64,000 nt of DNA. Source: Gekko japonicus. Its lineage: Eukaryota. Location: assembly GCF_001447785.1 (NCBI RefSeq), contig NW_015165831.1, positions 1,426,064 to 1,490,063 of the forward strand, in the 5' to 3' direction. A program made the translations under genes and the position numbers. How positions within the stretch are numbered: position 1 is the first letter of the stretch; each line of letters begins with the position of its first letter. Shown one piece after another: positions 1,954 to 42,303 of the stretch. Below the pieces are notes generated by a model. It searched no databases. It was not told the DNA's origin and saw only the letters and a program-made list of their open reading frames with translations.

Positions 1954-3213
1954 ATGGAAGCCGAAAGTTCGAGTCCCTCTTCCGACCCTTGCTGTGAGCT
2001 GTGCCTGGCCAAGAGGGCGCCCTACATCTGCCCGCGCTGCCACCTGCGTTTTTGCTCCGTGCCGTGCTACCAGGAACACGGCTCCTGCGCCCAGCTCTTC
2101 CAGCGCCGGGAGTTACAAATACACCTCCAGGGCCAGCGGGAGGATCCGGCCTCCCAACGCCGTCTAAAGGAGGCCCTCCTCCGCCTGCAGGAGCTACGCG
2201 AGCCCGGGGATGCGGACCTCCAGCTAGGCCTCGATCCCGGGTTGGAGCAGGTGGAGTCCGAAGCGCTGTGGGAGCAACTGAGCCCGGACCAAAGAAAGCG
2301 TTTCCAGCGGTTGCTGAACACCGGAGAGATCTCGGCCCTCTTGCCCCCTTGGAAGCCTTGGTGGACGGGGAGCGGCCGTGCTGCAGCGCTGATTCAGGAA
2401 CTGGGGGAGGCCGTCGCGGTCCCCGAGACCCTCCACGCCCCCTTGCAGCAACCGCAGCCCTCCCCGTGCACTGAAGCCTTGCAGCAGTCTCAGACTCCGG
2501 GGCCTCTGCGAGAGATCTCCGCAAGCACCCAGAGCCCTGCACAGCCGGCGGATGCCTCGACCTCCGTGCCTCCGGTGCCCGTCGTCATCCCCCCCCTGAG
2601 CAGCCTGACCCGTTCGCCCGTCTCGCCCCTGGTCCGCTTCCAGGTGCCCAACGTGCTGTACGCCTATGCCTATTCCCTGGCGCTTTACAACGGCGAGGCG
2701 GAGGAGGCCCAGCTGCTCCCGGAATTCTGCGAGACGGTTCTGGACGTCTCGGGGGCGCTGGGGGCCAAGCAGGGCTTCGGGTCCACGGCAGAGGCCCTGC
2801 AGGCGGCCCTGCAAGCCATAACTGTGGGGCGATACCCCGAATGCCTCCTGGGGAACGCCGGGGTGATGGCGGCGGTGGCCCAGATCTTAATGGGGGAATG
2901 CCAAGCCAGGCAAAAGGGGTATAGCTTGGCTGCCCTCGCCCACCTCTCCCGGCTGCTGAGCAAGGGGAGGAGGCGGGTGCCCGCCGGGGATCAATCCAGG
3001 CTGTACACAGCAAAGAAGAAGTGCGACTTCCTTTTGTCCTGGGTGAAGGATAACGAAGGGGCGTTAACCCTCCTGGCCCTGGAGGTGCAGAGAGAATACA
3101 AGGCCCATCTGGACTCCATCAAGGAGGTGGGGGCTGTCACCCAGGATCTGGAGAAGATGTGGGGGGCCAAAGTGCCTCCACCCAAAAAGACCTTGATAGA
3201 AGAATTGGACTGA
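1954..3213 (+). CDS. ZNHIT2: Zinc finger HIT domain-containing protein 2, single coding exon, 419 aa
   Basis: ATG at 1954 in strong Kozak context (ACGATGG; the ORF track starts at an upstream GTG at 1942). zf-HIT pattern CELC-x8-CPRC-x4-CSVPC-x3-H-x2-C, then LLPPWKPWW and PNVLYAYAYSLALYNG motifs. Intronless and convergent with TM7SF2, as in mammals. Confidence 0.95.
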   Translation: MEAESSSPSSDPCCELCLAKRAPYICPRCHLRFCSVPCYQEHGSCAQLFQRRELQIHLQGQREDPASQRRLKEALLRLQELREPGDADLQLGLDPGLEQVESEALWEQLSPDQRKRFQRLLNTGEISALLPPWKPWWTGSGRAAALIQELGEAVAVPETLHAPLQQPQPSPCTEALQQSQTPGPLREISASTQSPAQPADASTSVPPVPVVIPPLSSLTRSPVSPLVRFQVPNVLYAYAYSLALYNGEAEEAQLLPEFCETVLDVSGALGAKQGFGSTAEALQAALQAITVGRYPECLLGNAGVMAAVAQILMGECQARQKGYSLAALAHLSRLLSKGRRRVPAGDQSRLYTAKKKCDFLLSWVKDNEGALTLLALEVQREYKAHLDSIKEVGAVTQDLEKMWGAKVPPPKKTLIEELD

Positions 3214-5637: not shown

Positions 5638-5798
5638 TCAGTAAAGGTATGGGAAGATCCGGTAAGGGACTCGGCGGCAGTACTCCTGCCAGGCCAGGCC
5701 GTACTTCCTCAGGCACTGGTGCTCGTCCCTGGCCTCCCGGTGGATCAGAAGCAAGGTAAAGTAGAGGACGTAGAAATAAGGCAGGATGTGGCTGATGC
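5638..5798 (-). CDS. TM7SF2: TM7SF2 coding exon 10 (terminal)
   Basis: [14 protein letters not shown]...[12 protein letters not shown] followed by TGA. Confidence 0.95.
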
Positions 5799-17700: not shown

Positions 17701-19421
17701 TTTATTGTCTTAGTCATTGGCCATAACAGCACAAAGTAAATCAAAGCACAACAGAAATATACATCAATAACTTGCAGTAAGTCCTAGACCCCGTCTTATC
17801 TTTTTTGCCGCCAGTGCAAACAAAGCCATTCTGCTAGTAACATGTGCATCAGTATCAGAAAGCAAGAACACGGTCAAATCCTGCTCAGCAGTTCCATTAT
17901 ACAGAGGTACAATAGGATAAATAAACCTTTGCCTAAGTGATTCGTGCCATAAACATCTCAGAATGTAATGCTTGACATCATCCACTTCATCCATACCACA
18001 TAGGCATATTCTAGAAGCGGCAGGGGCACCCAGAAAGCGACCAATACAAACCATTGAAGGTATGGCATGGAACCTTAGGGCAGTAAAAGCCCTTCTCAGC
18101 TCCAAAGTAGTTAGTTTCTCAAGATATACAGTCCTACAATGGTCTCTTTTGAAGATCTTATACAAGGGGGCTGTATGGCAACTTACTACCATATGTCGAT
18201 TCAAAAGCCCATCCTTATTAAATACCCATTCCTTCAATTTAGCCCTTTGGGTTTCATTTACCAATAGGTCATCAGGGATTGAGTATTTCAATAAAATAGA
18301 GTTCAAGTAATCATCTGATCTTTTCGAGGATTTCAACAGCAAACCAAAACTTTGAACACCTAGAATATCCTGAGGTCGTTCTAAACATTTCCTCCAATAC
18401 GAGAGGATTCTTACATTTGCCCTGGCTTTCAGGGATACCATACCCAGTTCAGCCCTCATCAACGCCACAGGTGAACCTTTGGGTAAGACCAAAATCCGCC
18501 TCATAAAATAATTTTGCACTGTTTCTAGCAGGGACATGCATGTTAGGCCACACACCCCTAATGTAGCCAATCATCCTGCTGGGCGTGGCCAACTCAGGAG
18601 CCAGCCGGAACTCTGTCCCTGTGCGTTCCTGCCCCAAAATAGCCCTGCTGTTTTCTATGCTCTGTGCTTGCCTCATGAGACTTGCTCACTGTGTTGCACA
18701 TGCAATACATACATTCATTCATACATTCAGGCTAGGAATGAACGGTGTGCAGATGAAGGGGGGGCTGGCAACATATTCACTGCAAGCCAGTCTCAGTTCT
18801 CCAAGTCTGTAAACTGGGAAGGAAGATGACTAGCATCATCACAATATATTGGTTATTATATTTGGCATTAAACTTTCCTCCAATTAACGTAGAGCAAAGG
18901 GCCCTGCAAAGTAGGCTAGGTTTCAAGCAACTTGCCTCAAATACCTATGGTTGTCAGGTCTTACTGGCTTTGTGGTGGGGGACTCCCGGCTCTGAGCCTG
19001 GATCTTTTGGCACGCACGCAGTGATGATATCACCTGGAAGTGACGTCATCCCACTGGGCATGTCACACAGCGATGCTCTAGCATTTTGACAAAAACTCTA
19101 TGGTTACTGTTAAATACTGGGTTCCATGAATGAGCTTGCCCAGGGGGTAGTGGCTCAGAGGGACCTTGAAGCAAGGACCTTACATTCAAAAATTCAGAAC
19201 ATAACCCTGACCTGGATAGCCCAGGCAAGTCTGATCTTGTCAGATCTCAAAAGCTAAGCAGGGTGGACTCTGGCAAGTACTTGGATAAGAGACCTCCTTG
19301 GAATACCAGCAGTCAGGAGGACAGGGGCCAGGCTTTATTCAGCCACCTCTCTGAATATCCTCCAGGCCCCCAGTAGGGGTCAGTCACCAGAGGTCGCCAT
19401 GCACATACATTCACATGTGTG

Positions 19422-19452
<31 letters not shown>

Positions 19453-20773
19453 GAGTCATTTCCTATAGGAGCGCACAGGAGCGGAGCTCCGGCAGTAAAG
19501 AGCCCAGGGGGCGGGCACATGCAACAAGCCCCACCCCCTGCTCCCAGCAGCCCTCAGTCAGAGCAAGAAGAAGCCAGGTAAGTTGCAGAGCTCCCCCCAG
19601 CCCCCCGGTCCAAAACAGTCCAGTGGCACCTTTAAGACCAAGTTTTATTTAGGTACAAGCTCTCCCTCCTCTGCAAGGACAGATCTGCACGTTCCTCCCC
19701 CCCCCGCCCCCAATAGCTAGCAATCCAAAACAGTCCAGTGGAGCCTGAGCGGTGGGTGTTGCCTTCTGACACACTTCCAGTGATGTTAGGGGGTGTGGCA
19801 TATGCAAATAAGTTATGCTAATGAGTTCTGCTAATAAGCTCCTGCACCTCTTTTTCTACCAAATGACCCCTGCGCACAGACATGCACATATGAAAAATAC
19901 AAAAGAGACCCCCCAAGAAAATTCAAAACATGGAAGTTTCTTTATTAAAACACTTTCCTTCTGTTTCAGGGTGGCTTGCGATAACGGTTAAAACATTTTC
20001 CGCTGAAAAGCAAACATAACGTTGTCTTACCTTCCCCAGAGGGAGCATGTACAGCAGAGCCTGCAGCCCTACCCAGGCTAAGACCAGCACAAAGTCCTGG
20101 GGGTTCCATAGGGAGTGGAGCGTGGGCAGAGGCCAAGTGAAGTTCAAGAGACTGGCCTGCTCTGTCCCACACGTCAGTAGCAGGACGAAGACGGTGGCAG
20201 GCAACAGGATGAGGAGGCAGGCAGCCCCTGTGACAAAAAAGGAGGAGGGGAGGGTTAGAAAGGAGCAAGACGTAGTGCCTTGGGAAGGGAAAGTCAAGGA
20301 AATAACAGAACCCAGCTTTGTCAGCTGGGAGGCAACAGGATCAATATTCCAGACAGGGTTGCCAGCCTCCAGGTGGCAGCTGGAGATCTCCTGGGATTCC
20401 ATCTGCTCTCCAGGCGACAGAGATTAGCTCATCCTGGGAAAACAGTCGCTTTGGAAAACAGTCTCTATGGCATTCTATCCCATTGATGACCCTCCCCCCC
20501 CTCAAACCCCACCCTCTTCAGGCTCCACCCCCAAAATCTTCAGGCGTTTCCCAACCTGGAGCTGGCAACCCTAATTCCAGACAAAAAATTTTAAAAGGTA
20601 TTTTTATTCCCTAAGACAGCTACGGAGGGCTCAGAGAAACCTAGAGGACACCCGGGCTCCTTGTCTGTTTTGTCCCCCTCCCCCCCATCCTCCAACCACT
20701 CCAAAATTTCCTCCTTACCTAGAACACCCCCGAATTCCAGTTCTTTGGTGCGGGGGATCTTGTGTCGATCCAT
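5638..20773 (-). CDS. TM7SF2: Delta(14)-sterol reductase TM7SF2, 10 coding exons, 419 aa
   Basis: Exons 20719-20773, 20031-20227, 15815-15869, 14059-14253, 13444-13547, 12154-12273, 11250-11418, 8974-9054, 7106-7228, 5638-5798. All GT-AG with compatible phases, 1260 nt in total. ERG4/ERG24 motifs [71 protein letters not shown]. No Tudor domain, so not LBR. Confidence 0.96.
7106..7228 (-). CDS. TM7SF2: TM7SF2 coding exon 9
   Basis: [41 protein letters not shown](G); CAG acceptor, GTAAGT donor. Confidence 0.95.
7602..7990 (+). mobile_element. 5S rRNA-derived SINE (SINE3) interrupted by a poly(A) retro-fragment; other copies at 17-200(-), 19205-19400(+), 41455-41650(+), 43998-44185(-), 63190-63310(+)
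   Basis: 5S-like ATCTCAGAAGCTAAGCAG...AGTACTTGGATGGGAGACC..GGAATACCAGG followed by a non-5S body. Confidence 0.8.
7658..7840 (+). mobile_element. Short L1/Tx1-type 3' end with AATAAA and poly(A); TSD CTAAGCAGAG
   Basis: 10-bp direct repeats at 7648-7657 and 7841-7850. Confidence 0.75.
8058..8134. other. Assembly gap
   Basis: N run. Confidence 1.
8400..8687 (-). mobile_element. tRNA-derived SINE (MIR/Squam3-like); further copies at 44416-44688, 51904-52179, 55222-55418 and 27117-27190, older ones near 6393, 33310 and 49120
   Basis: Pol III A box (TGGTGTAGTGG) and B box (GGTTTGATTCC) head on the minus strand, (TTC)n tail, many near-identical copies. The family name is tentative. Confidence 0.8.
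8974..9054 (-). CDS. TM7SF2: TM7SF2 coding exon 8
   Basis: [27 protein letters not shown](G); CAG acceptor, weak GTTTGT donor. Confidence 0.92.
9294..10176 (+). mobile_element. Sauria SINE (9294-9604 plus 10143-10176) split by a CR1 insertion
   Basis: tRNA-like head, body GCCAACCTAGCAGTTTGAAAGCA...GAGTCGGATTCGACT; the tail GGCTTTCGAGCAAGAGAACCTTTACCTTTA resumes after the CR1. Confidence 0.88.
9605..10142 (+). mobile_element. 5'-truncated CR1 LINE 3' end
   Basis: ORF2 C-terminus [18 protein letters not shown]...[14 protein letters not shown], 3' UTR and (TTCTTATG)n tail; 4-bp GACT duplication. Confidence 0.9.
10399..10543. repeat. Long palindrome made of two inverted Penelope-like element ends (similar at 6631-6770 and 636-690)
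   Basis: Arms of about 70 bp, AGAGCAAGAGCCCAGTAGCACCTTAAAG...GAGCTTTCGTGAGT and its near reverse complement, with a tiny loop. Confidence 0.8.
10917..11114. mobile_element. hAT-type MITE family A; TSD GCTGCTAC
   Basis: TIR of the CAGTGTTCCCTC type with an 8-bp TSD. Confidence 0.88.
11250..11418 (-). CDS. TM7SF2: TM7SF2 coding exon 7
   Basis: [34 protein letters not shown]...; AAG acceptor, GTAAGT donor. Confidence 0.95.
12154..12273 (-). CDS. TM7SF2: TM7SF2 coding exon 6
   Basis: [40 protein letters not shown]; TAG acceptor, GTAGGT donor. Confidence 0.95.
12662..12960 (-). mobile_element. CR1 3' UTR fragment (same family as 9605)
   Basis: TAAGAACATAAGA tail and a body matching the reverse complement of 9850-10142. 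Confidence 0.85.
13444..13547 (-). CDS. TM7SF2: TM7SF2 coding exon 5
   Basis: [35 protein letters not shown]; CAG acceptor, GTAGGT donor. Confidence 0.95.
14059..14253 (-). CDS. TM7SF2: TM7SF2 coding exon 4
   Basis: [13 protein letters not shown]...LAPGGNS(G); CAG acceptor, GTGAGC donor. Confidence 0.93.
14672..15066. mobile_element. hAT-type MITE family B (TIR CAGGGCT); TSD TATGTATY
   Basis: CAGGGCT...AGCCCTG termini with internal CTCATTAGCATA-GGCCACACCC repeats. Confidence 0.85.
15211..15423. mobile_element. TAGGGTTGCCA-terminated MITE family; other copies near 11686, 20355, 24907, 29126, 34521, 47929 and 60510
   Basis: TAGGGTTGCCA...TGGCAACCCTA inverted termini and a shared internal sequence. 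Confidence 0.75.
15815..15869 (-). CDS. TM7SF2: TM7SF2 coding exon 3
   Basis: [18 protein letters not shown](G); CAG acceptor, GTGGGT donor. Confidence 0.92.
16399..16604. mobile_element. hAT-type MITE family A; TSD GCACAGAC
   Basis: TIR CAGTGTTCCCTCTAA...; 8-bp TSD at 16391-16398 and 16605-16612. Confidence 0.9.
17458..18647. mobile_element. hAT-type MITE family B; TSD CTGTTTTC; hosts the RTE-X-like insertion
   Basis: 8-bp repeats at 17450-17457 and 18648-18655. Confidence 0.85.
17690..18536 (-). mobile_element. 5'-truncated RTE-X-like LINE 3' end nested in a hAT MITE; TSD TGCATGTTAGGC
   Basis: Open C-terminal ORF with [17 protein letters not shown] and CCHC finger RICLC-x8-HYILRC; repeats at 17678-17689 and 18537-18548. 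Confidence 0.8.
19420..19448 (+). repeat. (CA)n microsatellite
   Basis: Read directly. Confidence 0.95.
20031..20227 (-). CDS. TM7SF2: TM7SF2 coding exon 2
   Basis: [14 protein letters not shown]...[12 protein letters not shown]; CAG acceptor, GTAAGA donor. Confidence 0.93.
20719..20773 (-). CDS. TM7SF2: TM7SF2 coding exon 1 ([18 protein letters not shown])
   Basis: CACCATGG start and donor G|GTAAGG. An acceptor CCAACAG at 20801 suggests an upstream non-coding exon. Confidence 0.88.
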
Positions 20774-26895: not shown

Positions 26896-29845
26896 ATTAT
26901 ACCCTGCTGAGTTCACCCCCCCACACCCTCCCTCCCCAGATCTCCCCGCGAGGTTCCTCTCCTCTGCACCCTCTTGGCCTTTCCCAGCCAGCTTGCCTTC
27001 CTCTCCTCCCTGGCTCTCCTGCCATCTCCCTTTTTATCTCTGGGGGTCCACCTGTGTTGGCCAAGGCCAGCACCGCCCCTCCCTTCTCTGAGCCTTGTTC
27101 CTCTCTTAACCCCCTTCCAGTTTGGAGTAGTGGTTAAGTGGGCAGACTCTAATCTGGGAGAACCAGGTTTGATTCCCCACTCCTCCACTTGTATAGGGCT
27201 AGCCATGGGGGCCCTTGCTGTCCCCCATGCCTTGGGGTTGCTTGCCAGCCTCCAGGTGGTAAGAAACCCAAGCAGCAGATACGCGCGGAAGGGAGTAAGT
27301 AATACAAAAGATACAAGAGATCAAATCGTGCATAAATAACAAAAATATATATTCAACGATCAATGAGTATAATAATCTAAACCTATATAAATAGAGTAGT
27401 TTTTCAAAAACATAGTGTAGAAATCAGAAACTCAAAAGTACACGGTCCAAATACAAAAACAGTCCTATTAATACACCTTCAGAAACAGTCCAAGTCAAAT
27501 TCCTCAAAAAGTGAATAGTCCAAATATAGACGTGAAGAGAAATTATTAGCAACTGTAGTTGGACTTGTTGAATATATTTTTCATTATTTATGCACGGTTT
27601 GATTTTTTGTGGTGGCTCATGAGGTGCTCTTCCGTGTCTTGGAGCATTTGCTGCCTTTTGCCCAGTAGATGGGGCTTTCTGTTGGCTTCTGTGCCACAGC
27701 TCCGTGCTCAGAGAGGCAATATATGTGATGAATGCTGGTTTCTTGGAGGTGAGGGAGACAGGTGGGCTATTGAGCACTGCGGATGTTCTACGTCTGAGCC
27801 ACAGCCCCTCAGTAACATAGTTTGGTCCACCCCCCTTTTTTATTGCCTGTCTATATTTAACTGCGACCATGTAGCCCAGCTGGTCTCCTTTTAAACTCTG
27901 TATCGTGATTTTAAAAATGCTATGAAATTAATACATTTAATTGTCACGCATTCTATAATATAATCACGAAGATATTCTATATTGTTGCCATTATTAAAAA
28001 GGAAACACAACACGACTGTAGAGGATGTTTTTAGTTAAAAGAGTTAATTGATTTATGAATACATTTTATAGCCTCTCTCTCCAACAAGGGCTCATGGGGC
28101 CTTTTACAGTTTTCGAAAGGATTCTTGAGAACTTGTAAAACTGCAACAGAAAGTTATACAGTTCAGCAGTCACAACCTCAATATGAGCCAAACAGAGCAA
28201 CGTAAATCAACAGCAGTTTTGCACAGTTAATATAACATTTATTTATTTCATTTCTACCTTTCTCACTGACACTTAAGGCCGACTACAACTAAAGAACAGT
28301 ATAATACATACAACCAACACAGAATTAGAGCAACCCATGCTATGAGCACAGTGTAATACAGACAATACAGTGTAATAGGACTGGAGATCGATGCAGTGGA
28401 ACATCAGATACAGCGGATGATTACAGAAATCAGAAAACAATGCAAACAAATACAGCATAATATATACAACAAAGTCTGCCTCAAGGGCCACTGACATCAA
28501 CTACAACCTTATTCGCCTTATAAAAGTGCCCTTGTCAATCATTCTGTTTTATGCATTCTGTGGAATGATAGCAGTGTGGAACCCTTCCTGATTTCATCAG
28601 ATGGGCCATTCCACCAGGTGGGAGCCATAGCAGAGAATACAGGTAGAGGATCTTCTTACCCATTTGATCTTACCCATTTGTAGGGTGGAAACGTCAAAAG
28701 GCTTTGCTCAGATGAGCAGCACTTGAGAATAACTCTGCAAACATTTAGAAACAGTCTTCCTGTCTGTTATGTTTTTACCCCACCTCTCCTCCAAAGAACT
28801 CAGGGAAGCATACTTGGTTCTCTCCTCCCTCATTTTATCATCACAACAATCCTGTGAGGTAGGTTCGGTTGAGAGATAATGACTGGCTCAAGGTCACCCA
28901 AAGGAGTTTCATGTCTGTGTGAGGGATCCGAACCCAGATCTGCCCTAATTTTGCACTGCCTTGTAAACAATAAGGTAATGGGGGAGGGTCACTTTTCAAT
29001 GAGGACCAGCCACACATAGCCAGCCAATAGAAGGCCTATGGAAATTGCACCTCCGCTGAGAATGTGACACTGCATAGGATCTCAGGAAAAATACATATTT
29101 ATACATATATTTAATTTATTTAAACTAGGGATGCCAGCCTCCAGGTGGGACCTGGGGATCCCCCAGAATTACAGCTCATCTCCAGACTACAGAGATCAGT
29201 TCTCCTGGAGAAAATGGATGCTTTGGAGGGTGGACTCTGTGGCCTTGTACCCCCACAGGGGCCCCTGTCCTCCCCAAGCTCCATCCTCAAATCTCCAGGA
29301 GTTTCCCAACCTGGATCTGGCAACCCTACCCCCCAACCATCTGCTGGTGGCTGGGCGGGGGACTTGGCAACCCTATTTAAAACAGCTATAGAGTGGTTGT
29401 CTGAGAAATAATGGCTTGGATCACACTGTAAACTTCCACAAACAAAAGGTGGGTTCGTAGTCTCCTCCCTCTATCAGCAGCCCCCCAATTCACCCCTCAT
29501 GCTAATCCCCCACCACCAGGTTTAGCATTTGGGGGGAAATTTAGGGAGAATTGGATGGGATGGGGGGAGGTGAGGAAGCCCAGTTCTGCTGATGGAAATG
29601 CCTCCCTGTTAAGAGAAGATTTACCATAGGACCCATCTCAATGTCCATAGTAGACTCAATTGCCATTCTTCAAAGCAGACAGGCTGAAAGCTAGCTTTGA
29701 AATGTATTCTGTAGCTTGTGTCTGCCCTGAGAAGGCTGTGTTAAACTAGCCTCTGAGCATGAGCAGCGTGCAAATTCAAACATTTATTTTCCCCAGCGGC
29801 CAATTCAATTGCTGCAGCTTGTGGTATGGTGAGGAGGTGCTTTTA

Positions 29846-31768
29846 CTACACATCACAGTTGTTGTGGAGAAACCAGGACAAGGAGACCCGTGTGAAAGTT
29901 GGAGTGGGAAGAACACAAGGGATCCCTGCGGCCACAGATCTTTTCGGTGCCATGCTGTTGCTCTGCAGCCAAGTCTGCAAGCTGGCAAGCCCACAGTGAC
30001 AAAACAAGGTCAGTTCCTGCAGATCCAAGGTCTGCAGCAGAACCAGTGGCTGGAATACAGATGGGGACAGGGTCATCATAGAGTTCCCACGGAGGCTGAG
30101 GGTACGCAAAGACTGCAGGCCAAGGAATACTTCCTCTGGAAGTAAGGGCAGGAGGTTCTCAGAGAGGTCCAGAGTCTGCAGAGACACCAACCCCCGGAAA
30201 AGACCCTTAGGAAAGTCCTTGAGGCTGCCGAAGCTGAGATTCAGGACCGTCAACCTCTCTAAATGATGAAAGATGCCTGCACATTTCCCTGCTTTCCAGA
30301 CGCCTGCCAGGTTGTTATGGGAAAGATCCAGTTCTCTGAGGTGTCTGGGGCCTTCTTGGATCCAGAAGCATCTTGCCAAGTGGTTGCTTGAGAGATTTAG
30401 AAAAAGCAAAGAGGGGATCTTCCCTAGCTGCTCCCAGAGCTGCCCCAGGTCACTCAGACGGTTGGAGGAGAGGTCAAGGTGTGTCAGGTTCTGGCTAAGA
30501 TGCTCAATGCCCAAGGTGTCCCTGATCCTGTTGTGCCCCAGCATCAGACGCTGCAGAGATGGGAGTTTACCGTTTGGTACTTGGGAGAGAGCATTGTCCT
30601 GTAAGTCAAGGATTTGCAAGGAATCCAGCCCCACAAGGGCATCATGTTGAACAATTCCAATGTGGTTGGACTTCAGGATGAGATACTGGAGGGGCAATGA
30701 CCTCAGACTTTTCAATGCTTTTGTGTACAACTCCCCAAGAAGGTTGTTGGATAGATCAAGAACATGCAGTTGATTCAGCTTGAGGAAGGCCCCATCATGG
30801 ATCTCGGTAATCTTATTGAACCTCAAAAACAGGATGTGGAGATCTGGGAAAGCTGAGAAGACAGAGGGGGCTAGTTCATTTAGGAAGCCATGGGACATGT
30901 CAAGGGAGAAGGTGCCACTATCATGTAGCCCAGAGAAGGTCCTGGCCGAAATGTCCTCCAGGTTATGGAAACCAAATGAGCTTCCAATCGCCACTGAGTA
31001 TTGCATCTTGAGGTTCTGGATCCGTGTGCCAGTTATGCTTGTGAAAAACTGTTCAACTTGCATTGCATCCCATGGATTGGAAGAGATGTCCAGGGTTCCC
31101 ACCGTGATGTTGTGGAAAGGGTTGGTGCAGGTGGGGTGGTAGAGCAAACGGTTAAAAGACAGGTCAAGCAAGGCAAGATGGCGCCCTTTCAGGTTTTGTA
31201 GGTCATCCCCACAAATCCTCTCAATGTTGTTGAGTTTCAGCTGAAGGAAGCTTAGCCTTCTAAGCTGTTGAAAGGCTGGATCAGGCCTCAGTCTCTGGAT
31301 GAGATTTCCAGAAAGATCCAGTCTCTTCAGGGACACCAAATCCTGGAAGTATCTTCTTTCCAAAACCTTATCATCAAAGCCATTAACATCCAAGAGTAAT
31401 ACCTCAAGCTTGGTCAGGCCTGCGAACGCAGCGGGGTGTAGCGTTACATTCATGTTGCCTCCAAGGTCCAGGAATGTGATACCAGCCACATTCTGAAAGG
31501 CCCTCTCTCCCACAAAGAGGGACCCTCCCAACTGCTTCCCAAGGGATAACATCTGCAGGGAATCCATTTGGGGCCAGGTAGAATTCAAGATGGTGGAGAA
31601 AAGGTTAAAATTCAGCAGGAGGACCTGGATGGTGGGATCAACTTTGGGAACTGTCTTGTGGCTTTGACCTTGGCAGTCGGCTACCAGTCGAAAATTTATC
31701 ATGGTATGATGGCAGCGGTCTGGGACATCTGTGGTGTAACCCAAGACAGTCAGCGATAGGATGGCCAT
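29846..31768 (-). CDS. TLR5: Soluble Toll-like receptor 5-like protein (TLR5S-like): LRR ectodomain only, 640 aa, no TM or TIR
   Basis: TLR5-type motifs LLLNFNLF, LHPAAFAGL, YFQDLVSLKRLDLSGN, CTNPFHNITVGTLDISSNPW, IGSSFGFHNLEDISARTFSGL, LDMSHGF, LSNNLLGELY. Complete LRR-CT (FCHC...C...C), then tandem stops TAG TAA and a minus-strand AATAAA at 29783-29788. A splice acceptor at 31780 indicates upstream exon(s), so the true start may lie further 5'. Confidence 0.9.
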   Translation of the reverse strand: MAILSLTVLGYTTDVPDRCHHTMINFRLVADCQGQSHKTVPKVDPTIQVLLLNFNLFSTILNSTWPQMDSLQMLSLGKQLGGSLFVGERAFQNVAGITFLDLGGNMNVTLHPAAFAGLTKLEVLLLDVNGFDDKVLERRYFQDLVSLKRLDLSGNLIQRLRPDPAFQQLRRLSFLQLKLNNIERICGDDLQNLKGRHLALLDLSFNRLLYHPTCTNPFHNITVGTLDISSNPWDAMQVEQFFTSITGTRIQNLKMQYSVAIGSSFGFHNLEDISARTFSGLHDSGTFSLDMSHGFLNELAPSVFSAFPDLHILFLRFNKITEIHDGAFLKLNQLHVLDLSNNLLGELYTKALKSLRSLPLQYLILKSNHIGIVQHDALVGLDSLQILDLQDNALSQVPNGKLPSLQRLMLGHNRIRDTLGIEHLSQNLTHLDLSSNRLSDLGQLWEQLGKIPSLLFLNLSSNHLARCFWIQEGPRHLRELDLSHNNLAGVWKAGKCAGIFHHLERLTVLNLSFGSLKDFPKGLFRGLVSLQTLDLSENLLPLLPEEVFLGLQSLRTLSLRGNSMMTLSPSVFQPLVLLQTLDLQELTLFCHCGLASLQTWLQSNSMAPKRSVAAGIPCVLPTPTFTRVSLSWFLHNNCDV

Positions 31769-32090
31769 ACAAAGGAGGACTGTAAATTAAAGAGAAGGTT
31801 ATTTATTCATTTGCCATAATTATCTATGCGTACTAGTTCTATAAATTACAATTCCCAGAGTTCCCCTGATTGCTGGCAGAGTTTAGTGTCTGGCACCCTG
31901 TGGCTCGAAGACCTTTGTTTGACTTTTATCTTTACCATTAAGTCACTAGCAGTGCCATTCTAAGGAAGTAAATCCCAATGAACAGACTTGAGTAGGATTC
32001 TGGGAAGACCTGCTAAGGGACGGCACAGTAGCAAGGCCATCTTAAGCAGAGTTACGCCCTTCTTTTCCCATCCATTTCAATGGGCGTAGC

Positions 32091-32507
32091 CAGGGCTATT
32101 TTTGGGCAGGAATGCACAGGAAGGGAGTTCCGGCTGGCTTCAGAGTTGGCCATGCCCACTACAGCCAAAGCCTCTGGATGCATGGCTACAGAGGGAAGGC
32201 CTGGAGAGCAAACCCCCCCCCCCGGTAACTCCGAGGTGGGCAAGCCAGGGGGGCCCCAGCAAGGATCGGGGAGGCATTTAAATGCCTCCCTGTGCCTCCC
32301 CTGGCCTGTCCAAGGGCTGGCTTACCCAGGCTCCCTGCAACTGCGGGACACCCAGGCAAACCAAGGGGAGGCATGGAATGTGGCCTAATATGCTAATGTG
32401 CTGTGCTGTCGGGGGTGTAGCCTAATATGCTAATGAGTTTCTGCTGTTGGGTGTGGCCTATTATGCAAATGAGTTCCTGCTGGTTTTTTTCTACAAAAAA
32501 AGCCCTG
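32091..32507. mobile_element. hAT-type MITE family B variant; TSD GGCGTAGS; just upstream of the TLR5S-like coding exon
   Basis: CAGGGCT...AGCCCTG termini; repeats at 32083-32090 and 32508-32515. Confidence 0.85.
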
Positions 32508-33858
32508 GGCGTAGGAGTGTAGCAGGATTTTAATTATGTCACCAGTTTTCTTGCCGATGATGCATGTTTTCATGTAGAAGCGAGTTCATATCAGTTTCAT
32601 CTACTGGTCAAACTGGTTGCATTAGGTTTTCTTTGATCTTGCACAGCTAATGAAAATGGTTACAGAAATACTAGATTCTGTTTAGAGCCAAACCATTCTG
32701 TTGGACTAGGATCTGGGAGACAGCATGTTTAAGTTAGAGTTGCCAGACCCCCTGGTGGAGGCAGAGGTCCTGGCCACCAGAGCCTGCCCCCCAGCTGTCG
32801 ATCAACTGGCTGGCCGGGGGACTTACTGGGAACAAAAAAAGTGTGTATGTGTGTGGGGGGGGGACTTAACCCTGAAACCTAGGAACCAGAACCTAAAAAG
32901 GTAAGTCAAACAGAACAGAGGGCCAACAATAAAAACTTAATGTTTATAATATGAAAAGATACATGTGTTTATTAGCAAAGAATTAAAAAACATATAAGGG
33001 CCCAATCACACCTCATGTAAAAATGTGTATCTTACACACAAGGGCCAATGGGCTTGGCTTACCAGGCCATGTTGTTGGCATCGCACAGGAAGTGATGTCA
33101 TCATGCCAGCAATGTCAGGGTGAGACGCTGATATTTCGGGCAAAAACTTTGGTAGAAGCTGTTTTCTACCATAGAGTTTTTGCCCAAATACCAGAGCAGC
33201 ACAGTGTCATTGCAGTGTGATGATGTCACTTCCTATGAGATGCCAGCAACGTGGCCTAGACCGTCCTCTTTCTCCTGGTAAGTCCTCCCATCCCCCGCCA
33301 TTTGCCTGGAAGGAGCCTTAGTTTGAATCCCCACTCTGCTGTGGAAGCACTGTGGATAGCCTTGCACAAACCATTCTCTTTCTCTGAGCCCAGCCTATCT
33401 CACAGGGCTGTTGTTATGAGGATAAAATGGAGATGGGGAGAACAATGTTGTAAACCTCTTGGGTTCCCATTGGGGACACAAGCAGGGTATGAATATCTAA
33501 ATGAATAAATACTTGTGGGGTACACAAATACAGAATATAGCTGATAAGGTAGAGTATTTGGCAATCTCTCCTTATTATAATTGAATAGTGGGTGCCAAAG
33601 TTCTAAAATGCGCCCCGTTAGTGTATGGGCAAAAAAATTGCCACTCAGAAGACGCTGCATCCGATGACTGGCTCCCTCAGCGAACCTGGCCTGCCATTGG
33701 CTGGGTGGCTGGGAGGGGAGGGAGCCAGTCATCGCGGCCAGTGTCGTCTTCACGGGCCGCATTCAGTCCAGCCAACGGAGCTGGTAGGGTCCGCCAGCTT
33801 CCCCCCTCCCCGCGCCCACTCCAAAACGGCAGACGGGGCCTTCAGGCCCTGTCCGCCG

Positions 33859-33984
33859 NNNNNNNNNNNNNNNNNNNNNNNNNNNNNNNNNNNNNNNNNN
33901 NNNNNNNNNNNNNNNNNNNNNNNNNNNNNNNNNNNNNNNNNNNNNNNNNNNNNNNNNNNNNNNNNNNNNNNNNNNNNNNNNNNN
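33859..33984. other. Assembly gap in GC-rich sequence
   Basis: N run. Confidence 1.
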
Positions 33985-34029
33985 CCCCCCGCACTCCAGG
34001 CCGCCGGACGGGTCCGCTCCACCGGTCCA

Positions 34030-34360
34030 CTACCCCCCTCCTTTTTCTCTCTCTCTCCTCCCAACATTCTCTCTCACACTCACTCTGTTTCCCCCCTCTC
34101 TTTCTTTCTCTGCCCTTCTTCCTTCTCAACTATCCTTCGTCCCATTCACTCTCTCTCAATCTCTGTCTTTCTACCCATCTTCCTTCCTTCCTTTCATTCT
34201 TCCTCCCTTCCTAGCTTCCTTCCTTCCTTTCTTTCCAAATTACTAACATTAACCCCACTCTGTCTCCCCCCCTTTTCTCTCTTTCCCCCCTCTCTAACTC
34301 TGTCTCTCTCTCTCTACCTCCTCTTCTCCATTCCTCCCTTCCACTCGCCCTTCCTTCCAA
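34030..34360 (+). repeat. Polypyrimidine low-complexity tract (CT/CCTT)
   Basis: Read directly. Confidence 0.9.
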
Positions 34361-35195
34361 GCAGTGACCCTTGTTAGGAAAACAGAGCTGTTGCGAAATG
34401 TTACATTCCAATCGGGGGGAAAGGCAGGATGTGTAGAAAATGCTGGTTTTTATTTCTTAAGAACACACCAAAGAGGAACTGAAACTTTCAAAACCAAAAT
34501 CAGCACTGAAGTCTGGTAACATAGGGCTGCCAAACTCCAGGTGGGACCTGGAGATCTCCCACTATTACAACTGATCTCCAGACAACAGACGTCAGGTCCC
34601 CTGGAGAAGATGGCCATTTTGGAGGGTGGACTGCACAGCATTGTATCCTGCTAGGGCCCCTCCTCTCCCCAAATCCCACCCTCCATGCCCAAAATCTCCA
34701 AGTATTTCCCAACTCACAACTAGCAGCCCTAGCTAACTGCCATCTCTAAGTGCCATTTCCATTTTTCCCAGAATGCCACATTGTTCAGTCTTAAACAATC
34801 TCCCTTATCTCCCTTATAAATAACTCACTAAAGTCCTAATATCTGTATGGAGAGTGGGCAGGTTCAGTCGGTTTTGACAGCGGAACTCCCACCTATGGTT
34901 ATTAAGAATATGTAACTGCTGTTACTACACATGTACTTAAACACAGACATAAAAGAAGCAATACAACCAATGCTCTTTAACATTTAAAATAAACTCTTTA
35001 TATATAAACAAAGCATGGAGGTTTTCATATAAATCCTCATTCACTTCTGGTTGGTTGCTATTACTTCATAGCAATGAATCTTCAGGATATTACTGAGTAC
35101 AGATATCTTCAGCATCCACAAGGATGCACAGAACAGAAAAAATACTAAGCACATAAATAATACATATATTGTAGGTCCATATGTTGTAAGCTCAC

Positions 35196-35400
35196 AGATA
35201 GTGGAACAGCATATGAGGTTTCCAGGCTGCACTAGGGATGCTGCAGCTCTTCTCAGTTGACTCCAGGATTCACCTGCAATAGTTCAAGGCAGGCCTTAAC
35301 ACAGCAAAGTCTATATAGGCCTCTCCCCAAGATGTTGCCTCTTTCTGGGCCAGGCTGAACTGCTGGCTGCTGGGAATACCCAGCCTCCTTTAGGGAAGGC
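35196..35400 (-). promoter_or_regulatory. Candidate promoter and first exon of the TLR5S-like gene
   Basis: TATATA at ~35312-35317, near-kappaB GGGAATACCC at ~35372-35381 and a GTGAGC donor at ~35195. A second exon-like segment at 34829-34892 (TAG acceptor, GTGAGT donor). No transcript evidence. Confidence 0.3.
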
Positions 35401-35738
35401 TACAAGCACTGAGCATGCTCATTAACTAAGTATAGAAGGGGGGAAAGGGAGTTAATTGCCACACCACCTATTTTTGTCACTGTGGAGTATTGTGAAGAGG
35501 AGGTGCCACTGAAGGGTCATTGCTGGCCATTAACTTTTTTTTCCTGACCAAAAAAGTACATCAGGAGGAAACCATGAAGTCAGCTGCCAGCTAGCGAGGG
35601 CTGGTCTCTAGAAAGGTGGCATGTACTTCTTTTGAAATAGAGAAGAACAAACAAATGAGTGAAGCTGCTGTTGTCGAGAGGCTGAGTAGCAGCACTTCTT
35701 AGAACGGGAACCTGGCAGGACCAATGCACTGCCATTAA

Positions 35739-35862
35739 GTAAAGGTAAAGGTTTCCCTTGCTTGAAAGTCAGTCGAATCCGACTCTAGGGTTGCGGTGCT
35801 CATCTCCGTTTCCAAGCAAAAGAGCCAGAGCTGTCCAAATACATTTCCGTGGCCATGTGGCC
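35739..35862 (-). mobile_element. Sauria SINE 3' fragment
   Basis: AAAGGTAAAGG...GAATCCGACTCTAGGGTTGCGGTGCTCATCTCCG matches the 47305 copy. Confidence 0.85.
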
Positions 35863-35958
35863 ATTACTCTGTGAATATGAGCCAGTGCTTTGCCTTGCCT
35901 CAGCCTGGACACAGAATTGTGGCATTATTGTGGCTTTGAGACCCTGTACTCATAACTT

Positions 35959-38900
35959 CTCCTGCCAACCTAGCAGTTCGAAAGCAAGAAATTGCAAGTA
36001 GATAAATAGGGACCACTTCGGTGGGAAGGTAACAGCGTTCCATGCGCCTTGGTGTTTAGTCATGCCGGCCACATGACCACGGAAACGTCTTCGGACAGCG
36101 CTGGCTCTTCGGCTTTGAAACGGAGATGATTTGTCCAGAGTGTCACCAGATGTTAGGCACTTTTATGTAGTGGCCCATCACTTGTGGCCCCTCATGGATC
36201 ACTGCCTTGTCGTGGCGAGGGGGCTTGCGCAGTTCAATGAAGCTGTGGGCTATGCCGTGAAGGGCCACCCAAGACGGACAGGCCACAGCAGAGAACTCAG
36301 ACCAAGCGTGATCCACCTGGAGAAGGAAATGGCAACCCACTCCAGTATTTTTGCCAAGAAAACCCCATGGACAGTATCAAAAGGCTAAAAGATATGACGC
36401 CGGAAGATGAGCCCCTCAGGTCGGAAGGTGTCCAATATGCTACTGAGGAAGAGCAGAGGGCAAGTACAAGTAACCCCAGAAAGAATGAAGCGGCTGGGCC
36501 AAAGCCGAAAGGACGCTCAGTTGTGGATGTGTCTGATGGTGAAAGGAAAGTCCGATGCTGCAAAGAACAATATTGCATAGGAACCTGGAATGTAAGATCT
36601 ATGAATCAAGGCAAGCTTGACGTGGTCAAAAATGAGATGGCAAGACTGAACATCGATATCTTAGGAATCAGTGAACTTAAGTGGACAGGAATGGGCGAAT
36701 TTAACTCAGAAGACCATTATATCTACTACTGTGGCCAGGAATCTCGTAGAAAAAATGGTGTGGCCTTTATAGTCAACAAGAGAGTGCAAAAGGCAGTACT
36801 GGGATACAATCTCAAAAATGACAGAATGATTTCGGTCCGATTCCAAGGCAAACCATTCAACATCACAGTAATCCAAGTCTATGCCCCAACCACTGATGCA
36901 GAAGAGGCTGAAGTGGACCGGTTCTATGAAGACCTACAACACCTCCTAGAACTAACACCAAAAAATGATGTCCTCATCATCATAGGGGACTGGAATGCTA
37001 AAGTAGGAAGTCAAAAGGTAACCGGAATAACAGACAAGTTTGGCCTTGGAAAGCAAAATGAAGCAGGGCAAAGGTTAACAGAGTTTTGTCAAGAGAACAC
37101 ACTGGTCATAGCGAACACCCTTTTCCAACAACCTAAGAGGCGACTCTACACATGGACATCACCAGATGGGCAACACCGAAATCAGATTGACTATATAATT
37201 TGCAGTCAAAGATGGAGAAGCTCTATCCAGTCAGTAAAAACAAGACCTGGAGCTGACTGTGGTTCAGATCATGAGCTACTCATTGCAAAATTCAGACTTA
37301 AACTGAAGAAAATTGGGAAAACCACGAGGCCATTCAGGTTTGACCTAGATCGCATCCCTGATGAATATACAGTAGAGGTGAAGAATAGATTCAAGGGTCT
37401 GGATTTGATAGATAGAGTGCCTGAAGAACTATGGACAGAGGTTCGTGACATCGTACAGGAGGCAGCAATCACCACCATACCAAAGAAAAAGAAATGCAAG
37501 AAAGCAAAATGGCTTTCTGATGAGGCTTTACAAATAGCAGAGGAAAGAAGGAAAGCGAAAGGCAAAGGCGAAAAGGAAAGATTTACCCAACTGAACGCAG
37601 ATTTCCAGAGAACAGCAAGGAGAGATAAGGAGGCCTTCCTGAATGAACAGTGCAAAGTAATAGAAGAAAACAATAGAATGGGAAGGACTAGAGATCTCTT
37701 CAAGAAAATTGGAGAAATCAAGGGAGCGTTCCATGCAAAGCTGGCCATGATAAAGGACAAAAACGGTAGGGACCTAACAGAAGCAGAAGAGATTAGGAAA
37801 AGATGGCAAGAATACACAGAAGAACTATACAAGAAAGACCTCAATGTCCTTGACAAACACGACGGTATAATCACTGACCTTGAGCCAGACATCCTGGAAT
37901 GTGAAGTTAAATGGGCCTTAGAAAGCATTACTAACAACAAAGCTAGTGGAGGTGATGGTATTCCAGCTGAGCTATTCAAAGTCTTAGAAGATGATGCTGT
38001 TAAAGTTCTGCACTCCATTTGCCAGCAAATTTGGAAAACGCAACAGTGGCCACAGGATTGGAAAAGATCAGTATACATTCCAATCCCAAAGAAGGGCAAT
38101 GCCAAGGAATGTTCAAACTATCGCACAATTGCACTCATATCACACGCTAGCAAGGTCATGCTCAAGATCCTACAAGCTAGGCTTCAACAGTACGTGGATA
38201 GAGAACTACCAGAAGTACAAGCTGGGTTTCGAAGAGGTAGAGGAACGAGAGATCATATTGCCAACATTCGCTGGATTATGGAGAAAGCAAGAGAGTACCA
38301 GAAAAATATCTACTTCTGCTTCATTGACTATGCTAAAGCCTTTGACTGTGTGGATCACAACAAACTATGGCAGGTCCTTAAAGAGATGGGAGTACCAGAC
38401 CACCTCACATGTCTCTTGAGAAACCTGTATAAGGGCCAAGAAGCGACAGTTAGAACCGGATACGGAACAACTGATTGGTTCAGCATAGGAAAAGGAGTAC
38501 GACAAGGATGTATACTGTCACCTTGCTTATTTAATATATATGCAGAGTACATCATGCGAAATGCTGGCCTGGATGAATCACAAGCGGGAATTAAGATTGC
38601 TGGGGAAAAGATCAACAACCTCAGATATGCAGATGATACCACTCTAATGGCTGAAAGTGAAAAGGATCTAAAGAGCCTCTTGCTCAGAGTAAAAGAGGAG
38701 AGCGCAAAAGTGGGCTTGAAGCTCAACATCAAAAAAACTAAGATCATGTCAACATCAAGAAAACTAAGATCATGGCATCCGGCCCCATCACTCCTTGGCA
38801 AATAGAAGGGGAAGTCCTGGAAGTAGTGACAGACTTCACATTCCTGGGATCCCAGATCACTGCAGACTGTGAGAGCAGCCATGAAATTAAAAGACACCTG

Positions 38901-39431
38901 CTCCTTGAGAGGAAAGCGATGGCGAACCTAAACAACATGATAAAAAGTAGAGACATTACCCTGCCAACAAAAGTCCGCATGGTCAAAGCAATGGTATTCC
39001 CAGTAGTCATGTATGGCTGCGAGAGTTGGACTATAAGGAAGGCCGAGCGCCGAATAATAGATTCTTTTGAACTATGGTGCTGGAGAAGACTCTTGAGAGT
39101 CCCTTGGACTGCAAGAAGATCAAATCAGTCAATCCTAAAAGAAATCAACTCTGACTGTTCCCTGGAAGGCCAGATAATGAAACTGAAGTTCAAATACTTT
39201 GGCCACCCAATGAGAAGGGAGCACTCACTGGAGAAGACCCTGATGCTGGGAAAGATTGAAGGTCAAAGAAGACGGGGACGGCAAAGGATGAGATGGTTAG
39301 ACAGTGTCATCGATGCAACGAACATGAAATTGAGCAAACTTCAGAGGACGGTGGAAGACTGGAAGGCCTGGCATGATCTGGTCCATGGGGTCGCGAAGAG
39401 TCGGTCTCGACTGTGCGACTGAACGACAACA
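35959..39431 (+). mobile_element. BovB (RTE-clade) LINE, near full length, with a Sauria SINE fragment at its 5' end; TSD ACTCATAACTT
   Basis: APE endonuclease (IGTWNVRSM, GDWNAKVG, SDHELL) and RT (FIDYAKAFD, GVRQGCILSP, LRYADD). BovB-type 3' end GGGGTCGCGAAGAGTCGG...GACTGAACGACAACA. 11-bp direct repeats at 35948-35958 and 39432-39442. Confidence 0.95.
36367..39422 (+). pseudogene. BovB endonuclease/reverse-transcriptase ORF, broken by one 26-bp tandem duplication
   Basis: ORFs 36367-38805 and 38772-39422 join into about 1009 aa if one copy of TCAACATCAARAAAACTAAGATCATG (38723-38748 / 38749-38774) is removed. Confidence 0.92.
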
Positions 39432-42169
39432 ACTCATAACTTGCATAATGCCAGGATAACATAACGACAAAGAGAAACTAGGGAGGGTCTTCCTCCAGCT
39501 GTTGTCCAGCTCCAAGTACAGCTCGAACAGGCAGCCACAGAATGTTCAGATCGGGGACAATGCTTATGTTCCGAACATATTTATTTACTTTATTTGTATC
39601 CTGACTTTCACCCCAACAGGGACCCAAAGCAGCTTATGTTGTTCTCCTCTCCTCCGTTTTATCCTCACAACAAAGGTGTGACAGTAGAAAACAGCAAGAG
39701 TCCAGTAGCACCGCAAAGACTAACAAAATATGTGGCCAGCCAGGGTAGCAGCTTTTGTGAGTCACTGCTCATTTCTTCAGATACAGCTAGAACAGCAGTC
39801 CAAACCTGTGAGGTAGGTTAGGCAATGCATGTTGATGCCGCCATTCCTCACAAGCCACTCCCAAGTAGAAACAGCTGTCTTTGTTACAGTTGGCCCTGAA
39901 AACTCTTTCTTTACCATTCCCTCAACCTCAAAGGGTGGCCAATTTCCCCCCCTGGAAGGGCTCCTGTGTCTTTGGCAGCTATATGACAGTCAGACATTTA
40001 ACAGTTGGGACTTTCAAAGCAACATCAAAGCCTTGGTATCAGGAGCGATTTTGGTTGCAGATGCTGGAGACCAACCCTAGAACTTTTTGCATGCAAGGTG
40101 TGATCTGACCCACACAGTGATTGCCAAATGACCAGGGGGGAAACCAGCCTGACCTGCTCCTCTGCCTTGAATAGCAATCTGATCTTCAGAAATCAGTAAG
40201 TTAAACATTTCAAGATAAGTGCAAGCACCTATTTACAGTTTACAAATCATGCTTCTGTTAAAAGCTTAGGAATAGGAGCTGGAAACAAACTGGAACATCT
40301 GTCTTCAACCAAATTATAGGCCATCCCCCCCCCACCACCACAAACCCTTCCCCGTCTCCATGCTGGTGGCCCCAGCTCCAACGATCTTTCATTACTCACC
40401 TCTTTGAGCCCCACAAAACAGGCCTCCTTGTTGAAACCTCAGCATTGTGGTACCCGTGCAAAGGAGAGAGCTCTCTCTTCTATTCAGGCTGCAACAGCCA
40501 TTGCCTCATATAAACCCCACCAGAGTGAGGTGTTCCGCTCTCTAAGGCCCTACGTCAACAGCCCAGCATTGACTCAAAAAGTGATTTGGCAACTTGTGCA
40601 AATGGGGAAATGCTAGGGAAATTCCCCTCATGGCCCTTCTAGCTTATTGCTGTTGGCATTTCTCCATCACCACCATGGTGCCAACTCACGAGCAAGACCC
40701 CTGAGGTCAACAGAGCCTTAGTTGTATTTTGGGTTAGTTATCTAACCAGATTCAGGTGCAGACAGGGATTCTGTGAGTAGAGAGGGCAGAGGTTAAGAGA
40801 CTCCGCTATGAATTAAAGCATCCCTGTTGTGAGTCTTATCTACGATGAACCCACTCAGTGGTCCTAAACTAGCCACTCTCCCTTAGTGCTGGCCCCCTAT
40901 CTGCAATATGGGGATATTGACCTACTTACAGAGTTGTTATTGGGATTACAATGTTGTTATACATGGGAAGTAGTTTGAACATTAACTGTGTAAATGTGAA
41001 GCACTGTTCTCACTGGCAGGGCATGTGTTCAGTCCCTGGCATTTCCAGCTCAAGGATTTCAAACAGGAGGTCTTGCAAAAGACCTTTCCCTGCCCTGGAC
41101 CCTGAGAGCCACTGCCAGTTAAGAGAAGTAAAAAAGCAGCTCAGTGGTCTGTTTCAGTATAAGGTAGCATCATATGTGCATTGAAGAGGAAATGTCAGAA
41201 CTCGTACTTTCCTACAGCACGGTGCACAGAGCTATGCCTCTTGAAATGACCTCTGGTCCTGCTATTAAATGCACTCATCTGTTTCCTATTCTCTTTTGTG
41301 TTTTTGTCTTTGTGACGGGTGCTGTTTCATGAGCCAGATGTGGGCCAAAGACTGCCCAGTTCCCGATTCTCCTACCTAATTTTGATTGAGGGATGGTAAC
41401 AAGTCTGACCGCTGTTTCGATTGCAAGGAAAAGGGAAAAAAATGTTTTCACTGGCTAGTCCAATCTCGTCAGATCTCAGAAGCCAAGCAGGGTCAGCCCT
41501 GGTTATTACACGGATGGGAGACCACCAAGGAAGTCCAGGGTTGCAATGCAGAGGCTGACAATGGCAAACCGTCTCTGAATGTCTCTTGCCTTGAAAACCC
41601 TACGGGGTTGCTATAAGTCAGCTGTGACTTGAAAGCACTTTGTACCACTACCAAAGAACAGGGACACATTTATTTTTTTATAAAATAATGTTTTGGATTT
41701 TGCATGGAATTTGTGGTAGACGATGGTACACACTGGTTTTCAATGTAGCACCTGAAATCTATAATTATACAGAACTGACTGGACCAACTTACACATTACA
41801 AAGTTCTTGTGTTCACCGAGGTCCTGTTGATCATATGTGCTCTGTGAGTTCTAGGGGTCGTAATTCCCAGGTGCACACGGTCCCAATTCGGACCAGCAGC
41901 ATCGGGAGAGGGGATTTAAGTCTCCTCTCTTATACAATTTCTCTGACCTAAAACAGCATGGGGGAGCCATTGTTTGTACTGTTGGGGGCTAAACTGTGTA
42001 CTGATGGCTACATTTATGTTTTGCCAGTGGGGCAAATAGCAGTTCCCTGGGGCCGTTTTAAGTGAGGAAAATTACATGGAAGGCAACTCCTCAGCATATC
42101 TGATTGACACCCAGGCAGACACATGGGACGGGGTGGGGGTGGGGCGCAAGAACTTTGTAATGCATGACT

Positions 42170-42303
42170 NNNNNNNNNNNNNNNNNNNNNNNNNNNNNNN
42201 NNNNNNNNNNNNNNNNNNNNNNNNNNNNNNNNNNNNNNNNNNNNNNNNNNNNNNNNNNNNNNNNNNNNNNNNNNNNNNNNNNNNNNNNNNNNNNNNNNNN
42301 NNN
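42170..42303. other. Assembly gap
   Basis: N run. Confidence 1.

Follow-up and report, generated by a model that had tools for sequence, protein, structure and literature searches.

Does a lizard possess, in addition to the membrane-bound flagellin receptor TLR5, a secreted TLR5 that consists of the ectodomain only, and is such a protein the counterpart of the soluble TLR5S of teleosts? This question is raised by a locus in a stretch of 64,000 nucleotides from Gekko japonicus (contig NW_015165831.1), which as a whole is called the window and to which all positions refer. An initial annotation had proposed here an intact gene for an ectodomain-only TLR5, regarded as a candidate secreted flagellin sensor or decoy. 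According to our analysis, this gene is, with near certainty, G. japonicus TLR5L. The explanation that accounts best for the results, and which we consider fairly probable, is a two-exon TLR5L gene whose product is secreted and acts as a putative flagellin binder modulating membrane TLR5.

An intact two-exon gene

The listing of open reading frames (ORFs) of the window contains a 640-aa ORF starting with ATG at 29846..31768 on the minus strand; in length it ranks second, exceeded by one ORF of a long interspersed nuclear element (LINE). The uninterrupted frame of 640 codons noticed initially was thus borne out, and a script count reproduced the features listed with it: 20 motifs of the LxxLxLxxN type, corresponding to about 20 leucine-rich repeats (LRRs), exactly six N-glycosylation sequons (NST62, NVT107, NIT220, NLT427, NLS458, NLS510), and ten cysteines, which include the four of the C-terminal cap (LRR-CT). 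As described, the ORF terminates with ...FLHNNCDV two residues after the last LRR-CT cysteine, the stop codon TAG is followed by an in-frame TAA, and an AATAAA is located 60 nt past the stop. Transcript cleavage would be expected about 15-25 nt beyond this signal.

The ATG at 31768 is probably internal, and the likely start codon lies 8.6 kb upstream at 40445. A canonical acceptor (tttacag/) is positioned 11 nt upstream of the ORF's ATG, behind a polypyrimidine tract. The NCBI model "toll-like receptor 5 [Gekko japonicus]" (P0001, 659 aa) is 100% identical to the ORF product and 19 residues longer; a six-frame translation located its first 15 residues at 40401-40445 on the minus strand. Translating exon 1 together with exon 2 (Table 1) gave exactly P0001. 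This join was made solely for the comparison with P0001; searches used exon 2 or P0001. Peptides related to that of the gecko exon 1 are present in the models of Heteronotia, Lacerta, and Anolis. The hydrophobic N-terminus reported for the ORF is indeed hydrophobic, but constitutes merely the rear half of the predicted signal peptide, the front of which is encoded in exon 1. The gene is not new: it is already annotated as the mentioned NCBI model, and its family has been named TLR5L in the literature (PMC6946030).

Absence of membrane and signalling segments

A Pfam search of the exon-2 protein assigned LRR families alone and detected no TIR domain. With two membrane TLR5 proteins as queries, tblastn at E<=10 found no sequence resembling a transmembrane or TIR segment in the 64 kb, which confirms that no such remnant follows the gene. 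The matches were limited to the ectodomains; residues 633-858 of the queries stayed unmatched across the window, i.e. over 29.8 kb downstream and 32 kb upstream of the gene. Having neither a transmembrane helix nor a TIR domain, the gecko protein is not a signalling type I membrane TLR.

It could be argued that the gene encodes a membrane receptor after all, either because transcripts skip the stop and reach a distant transmembrane/TIR exon or because the assembly lost this exon. The window does have three assembly gaps; support for such an arrangement was not found. The tandem stops and the AATAAA follow directly after the LRR-CT, and a sterol reductase gene in the same orientation comes next downstream, with neither a TIR exon nor an assembly gap between the TLR5L stop and the first matched reductase exon at 20273. 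Moreover, in chromosome-scale assemblies obtained independently, the stop of the orthologues falls at the same residue. In view of these findings, a membrane receptor is highly improbable.

An alignment of 60 sequences illustrates how this end point is shared. All short non-teleost proteins (31/31) end 0-4 residues from the gecko C-terminus, whereas the membrane forms run 213-282 residues past it, through the transmembrane helix and the TIR domain. Since the stop position is common to 31 orthologues from sturgeon to gecko, selection is the sole explanation; this substantiates the earlier view that the clean stop at a domain boundary and the intact frame indicate a selected protein. Across 43 orthologues, about 80 columns are invariant, cysteine pairs included; the framework leucines and asparagines are conserved, and the LRR-CT cysteine columns are invariant or nearly so. 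The gene is intact and under selection, and its truncation is ancient and conserved.

The same data bear on the idea of a decaying or silent duplicate, whose ORF is open by chance or was disabled recently and which is not expressed. Such a duplicate is hard to reconcile with an open frame of 640 codons whose length and stop recur in more than 40 species over more than 400 million years, with the conservation of framework residues and of all cysteine pairs, or with the canonical splice sites, the poly(A) signal, and an exon-1 peptide conserved in other lizards. In addition, the published ratio of nonsynonymous to synonymous substitution rates (dN/dS) for reptile TLR5L is 0.236, based on nine sequences and without positively selected sites (PMC6946030). 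We therefore regard decay as very unlikely.

Phylogenetic position of the gecko gene

TIR-less relatives of about 650 aa are 83-88% identical to the gecko protein in other geckos and 57-69% in other squamates. The values are 55% for turtles, 50% for caecilians and salamanders, 44-49% for frogs, and 44-45% for lungfish, bichir, and sturgeons; the tuatara sequence is a fragment. In contrast, membrane TLR5 reaches merely 36-40% identity. This includes the membrane receptor of the gecko Heteronotia, which carries both genes (P0004 and P0067).

A tree was computed from the ectodomain columns by means of IQ-TREE with the model LG+C20. In it, the short non-teleost proteins form a single clade with a support of 100 in the Shimodaira-Hasegawa-like approximate likelihood ratio test (SH-aLRT). 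This TLR5L clade holds squamates, among them the gecko, as well as tuatara, turtles, amphibians, lungfish, bichir, and sturgeons/paddlefish, and its internal order approximates the species tree. Some of the relatives bear the label "Toll-like receptor 5L"; two of these, P0031 and P0045, share 72% and 64% identity with members of the clade, respectively.

The short forms of teleosts branch from within the membrane TLR5 of this group (support 100). Forcing all TIR-less gnathostome forms together cost 316 log-likelihood units, and this topology was rejected by the approximately unbiased (AU) test (p 2.5e-73). Because a single origin of the TIR-less forms is rejected, the gecko gene is not an orthologue of teleost TLR5S; the equation of the two, which the initial annotation had suggested, has to be replaced by a separate, older clade. 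Membrane TLR5 of sharks, tetrapods, and teleosts formed a clade (SH-aLRT 90) that excluded TLR5L. An origin of TLR5L later than the split of the cartilaginous fishes is marginally disfavoured by an AU p of 0.04, which is not decisive. On the basis of this tree, TLR5L split from membrane TLR5 at or before the base of the bony vertebrates, and ectodomain-only TLR5 arose at least two times independently, as TLR5L and as teleost TLR5S.

Orthologues from mammals, birds, and crocodilians were not among the best protein-database matches. This is compatible with a loss of the gene in these groups, without proving it.

Several individual sequences deserve a comment. In the TLR5L model of Sphaerodactylus townsendi (P0007), 22 unrelated residues (GTPPFCLLGQPSDSTSCTEVNQ) replace a conserved LRR11 segment at about 312-333, after which the frame recovers; a compensating pair of frameshifts or an assembly error could be the reason. 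Two TIR-less TLR5-like proteins of lamprey (P0089 and P0092, about 720 aa) group with lamprey membrane TLR5 on long branches. A TIR-less protein of the catfish Neoarius (P0095, 670 aa) stands apart from the other teleost short forms, together with cypriniform TLR5b. The lamprey and catfish proteins suggest further independent truncations of TLR5, with errors in the gene models as a possible alternative.

Fold and predicted secretion

When exon 1 is included, the N-terminus consists of a charged n-region followed by the hydrophobic core VLLCMAILSLTVL. In a hydropathy analysis, this core was the most hydrophobic segment, unmatched by any other 19-residue window in the protein; the 19 residues contributed by exon 1 complete a predicted signal peptide. 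A C-terminal hydrophobic tail, as needed for a glycosylphosphatidylinositol anchor, was not found in the 659-aa precursor. We consider it very likely that gecko TLR5L, given these predicted features, is secreted.

Among proteins of solved structure, the best sequence relative is human TLR5 (E 7.7e-87), followed by zebrafish TLR5b (E 4.9e-55); the next matches (ALS, TLR3) have values of 1e-36 or weaker. The alignment with human TLR5 stops at a shared 'CD', immediately before the human transmembrane segment. An AlphaFold2 model was generated from 43 orthologues and gave a mean predicted local distance difference test value (pLDDT) of 88.1 and a predicted template modelling score (pTM) of 0.85. 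Besides two short stretches of low confidence, the uncertain parts are the signal peptide and residues 279-288, which belong to the loop of LRR9. For this model, Foldseek listed 5gy2, 6bxa, and 3v47 at ranks 1-3, with target TM-scores of 0.78-0.86; the best structural matches are thus N-terminal fragments of zebrafish TLR5 crystallised with flagellin (TLR5b-flagellin, 5gy2 and 3v47). By sequence, LRR9 loop, and fold, the gecko protein belongs to the TLR5 subfamily, of which it represents the ectodomain.

The putative ligand-binding site

In crystal structures of TLR5, the LRR9 loop forms a cavity for flagellin Arg89/90, which is a hot spot of binding (PMC5247705). The gecko segment GSSFGFHNLED, which had been interpreted as this loop, aligns with human GAGFGFHNIKD and zebrafish TLR5b GSSFGHTNFKD, and the interpretation is therefore correct. 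The motif, G-x-x-F-G-[FH]-x-N (also written G-x-x-F-G-F-x-N-L-x-D), is present in every TLR5L and membrane TLR5 row of the alignment and absent from its TLR13 and amphioxus outgroup rows. Within the 43 TLR5L orthologues, G281, F286, and N288 show no variation, F284 and G285 hardly any. The low pLDDT of the gecko loop fits the flexibility of a loop without ligand; in TLR5 the loop is flexible until the ligand is bound (PMC4938411).

The conservation profile points in the same direction. The column entropy of TLR5L is 0.9-1.3 over residues ~100-420, compared to 1.4-2.3 in the C-terminal third; this best conserved stretch is the equivalent of the flagellin-binding N14 fragment. Since conservation is strongest in the LRR9 loop and in the N-terminal two-thirds of the protein, gecko TLR5L probably binds flagellin, as far as can be judged from sequence comparison.

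Several points speak against a secreted flagellin binder. The signal peptide was assigned solely by hydropathy. In the cavity, the gecko protein differs from zebrafish TLR5b by the exchanges Y267V, N268A, H275F, F278L, and K303F; human TLR5 is similar at three of these positions (H275F, K303F, and, with an aliphatic residue, F278). More than 400 million years of separate evolution leave room for a change of ligand. Finally, our literature search gave no data on expression, secretion, or binding for any reptile TLR5L.

The product might be a secreted LRR protein which descends from TLR5 and does not recognise flagellin, having instead another microbial or host ligand or serving as a partner of another receptor. 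The side chains in the LRR9 cavity that are unlike those of zebrafish TLR5b would fit this possibility, as would the low identity to membrane TLR5 after a split at or before the base of the bony vertebrates; Liu et al. 2019 (PMC6946030) list the ligand of TLR5L as unknown. On the other hand, the invariant features of the 43 orthologues outside the LRR framework include the LRR9 loop motif, the hallmark of flagellin recognition, and conservation peaks over the equivalent of the flagellin-binding fragment. Furthermore, the independently truncated teleost TLR5S binds flagellin according to Tsukada 2005, as cited in PMC6946030. A ligand other than flagellin is therefore a serious but rather unlikely alternative.

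Proposed mechanism and significance

Under the favoured explanation of a flagellin-binding TLR5L, the 659-aa precursor would give rise to a secreted, N-glycosylated horseshoe of about 70 kDa. Monomeric flagellin would be bound on the lateral face from LRR-NT to LRR10, and, as happens in membrane TLR5, the LRR9 loop would enclose the conserved arginine of flagellin. Without a TIR domain, TLR5L would be incapable of signalling alone, and its role would be limited to modulating membrane TLR5. It may enhance signalling by handing over or co-binding flagellin, as is said of trout TLR5S, or may instead sequester flagellin.

The latter case, a decoy that lowers TLR5 signalling and limits inflammation caused by bacteria of gut or skin, is a sub-case of the explanation given above. 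An intact ligand site without a signalling domain suits a decoy, and in mammals the soluble ectodomains of other TLRs act as inhibitors. However, the one analogue known to have been studied, trout TLR5S, reportedly enhanced rather than inhibited TLR5 signalling, and the present evidence favours neither enhancement nor inhibition. Taken by itself, the decoy is a tentative proposal and rather improbable, to a similar degree as a protein with a different ligand.

The individual results can be combined into one scenario: a secreted flagellin binder was kept for more than 400 million years, possibly since before the split of the cartilaginous fishes, independently of teleost TLR5S; it was lost or is unseen in mammals, birds, and crocodilians, and it serves lizards as a humoral partner of membrane TLR5. 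We see the chances of this combination as evenly balanced. If it is true, soluble TLR5 is a repeatedly evolved solution, and lizards have a humoral arm of flagellin sensing.

As a discovery, the locus is of small value, since the gene has already been annotated and named and published selection analyses cover it. The interest lies in the function of a strongly conserved, presumably secreted paralogue of TLR5 in reptiles and amphibians; a functional study of a tetrapod TLR5L was not found in the literature. Many reptiles carry Salmonella. Evidence for flagellin binding and for a boosting or damping effect on membrane TLR5 would show more clearly how ectothermic tetrapods deal with flagellated bacteria, e.g. 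Salmonella, and the function might also hint at why TLR5L is not seen in mammals and birds.

Upstream region and genomic neighbourhood

The coordinates of the gene and of its neighbours are compiled in Table 1.

Table 1. Features of the TLR5L locus and its surroundings (window positions)
Feature	Position	Strand	Description
Exon 1, coding part	40400..40445	-	ATG 40445-40443, 15 codons (MLRFQQGGLFCGAQR) and first base of Val16; donor AG/GTGAGT
Intron 1	31780..40399	-	8,620 nt, GT...AG; includes assembly gap 33859-33984 and opposite-strand LINE ORF 36367-38805
Exon 2	29846..31779	-	remaining predicted signal peptide, LRR-NT, ~20-22 LRRs, LRR-CT, stop TAG 29848-29846
LRR9 loop codons (GSSFGFHNLED)	30953..30985	-	P0001 residues 281-291
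LRR-CT cap, four cysteines	29855..30001	-	ORF C590, C592, C618, C638; protein end 2 residues on
Start of 3' untranslated region	29783..29845	-	TAA 29845-29843, AATAAA 29788-29783
Putative core promoter and 5' untranslated region	40446..40627	-	read from the sequence
ERG4/ERG24-type sterol reductase exons (TM7SF2-like)	5641..20273	-	tblastn, nine exon matches, E 1e-3 to 3e-26
ZNHIT2-like single-exon ORF	1942..3210	+	Pfam zf-HIT; GC-rich island, GC 0.594
409-aa ORF, candidate large VPS51 exon	55233..56462	-	upstream of TLR5L, same strand

Upstream of exon 1, a TATA-like TTTATAT is located at 40514-40508 on the minus strand, a C/EBP-like TTTGCACAAG at 40602-40593, and a palindromic NF-kB consensus, GGGGAATTTCCC, at 40627-40616. 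These sites, all within 190 bp of the start codon, would fit an inducible gene and are given as a lead. Acute-phase promoters typically have such a layout of TATA-like, C/EBP-like, and kB elements; the frequency of the kB motif in the window corresponds to chance. As the NF-kB consensus is not enriched in the 64-kb window (19 sites versus 15.7 expected), the kB site of the putative promoter is a mere lead.

Within the TLR5L intron, an intact LINE ORF of 812 aa with Exo_endo_phos and RVT_1 domains lies antisense to the gene (36367-38805, plus strand). Runs of N, which are assembly gaps or masked sequence, were noted at 8058-8134, 33859-33984, and 42170-42303; none of them touches a described exon.

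The query that detected the sterol reductase downstream was a segment of the Lerista fusion model P0017 (residues 641-1028) bearing PF01222. For the ZNHIT2-like ORF, the best match among solved structures is 'Zinc finger HIT domain containing protein 2'. The 409-aa ORF upstream of TLR5L gave neither a Pfam nor a PDB match; among the named ESM-Atlas clusters, the tethering-complex families Dor1, Exo84, and Vps54 come nearest to it (scores 0.89-0.91), and the TLR5L model of Rhinatrema is labelled as a VPS51 isoform. This evidence is weak, and the ORF is probably a large VPS51 exon. A Pfam search of ten more ORFs between 43 and 63 kb gave no match. The ZNHIT2-like ORF, the TM7SF2-like exons, and the probable VPS51 exon resemble a conserved block around TLR5L. 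We take VPS51, TM7SF2, and ZNHIT2 to be direct neighbours on human 11q13; if this adjacency holds, TLR5L would have disappeared in mammals from a block that is otherwise conserved.

Comparison with known systems

Liu et al. 2019 (Genome Biol Evol, PMC6946030) divide the TLR5 subfamily into TLR5, TLR5S, and TLR5L. They describe soluble TLR5 forms in fishes, amphibians, and reptiles, with TLR5S being nearer to TLR5 than to TLR5L. PMC12179096 cites earlier accounts of TLR5L from amphibians, turtles, and anole and shows that a frog TLR5L is up-regulated upon bacterial infection. Membrane TLR5 is the subject of other reptile studies: PsTLR5 of the soft-shelled turtle is an 889-aa membrane form and not TLR5L (PMC11431187), and the Anolis TLR5 paper likewise concerns the membrane receptor (PMC4703953). 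In a paper on the desert tortoise, the sole soluble form mentioned is fish TLR5S.

Amphibian and reptile TLR5L are members of the same family, have about 650 aa, and lack transmembrane helix and TIR domain; the gecko protein falls in their clade and shows no essential difference. Compared to Liu et al. 2019, our analysis adds the bichir, sturgeon/paddlefish, and lungfish proteins to the TLR5L clade. Because of these members, TLR5L is older than the 'fish versus amphibian' origin suggested in PMC6946030. A further addition is the location of gecko TLR5L, flanked by a probable VPS51 exon on one side and a TM7SF2-like gene on the other.

Membrane TLR5, as known from human, zebrafish (TLR5b; 3v47, 5gy2), and Anolis, shares with TLR5L the fold of the ectodomain, the cysteine pairs, and the LRR9 loop. 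It differs in being encoded at a separate locus and in having the low sequence identity stated above; lacking transmembrane helix and TIR domain, TLR5L does not recruit MyD88. Teleost TLR5S, e.g. of rainbow trout, has in common with TLR5L an ectodomain that ends soon after the LRR-CT and a retained LRR9 loop motif. The two are not orthologous, and their likeness results from convergent truncation. The function proposed for TLR5L is modelled on teleost TLR5S, which is secreted, binds flagellin, and is induced during infection.

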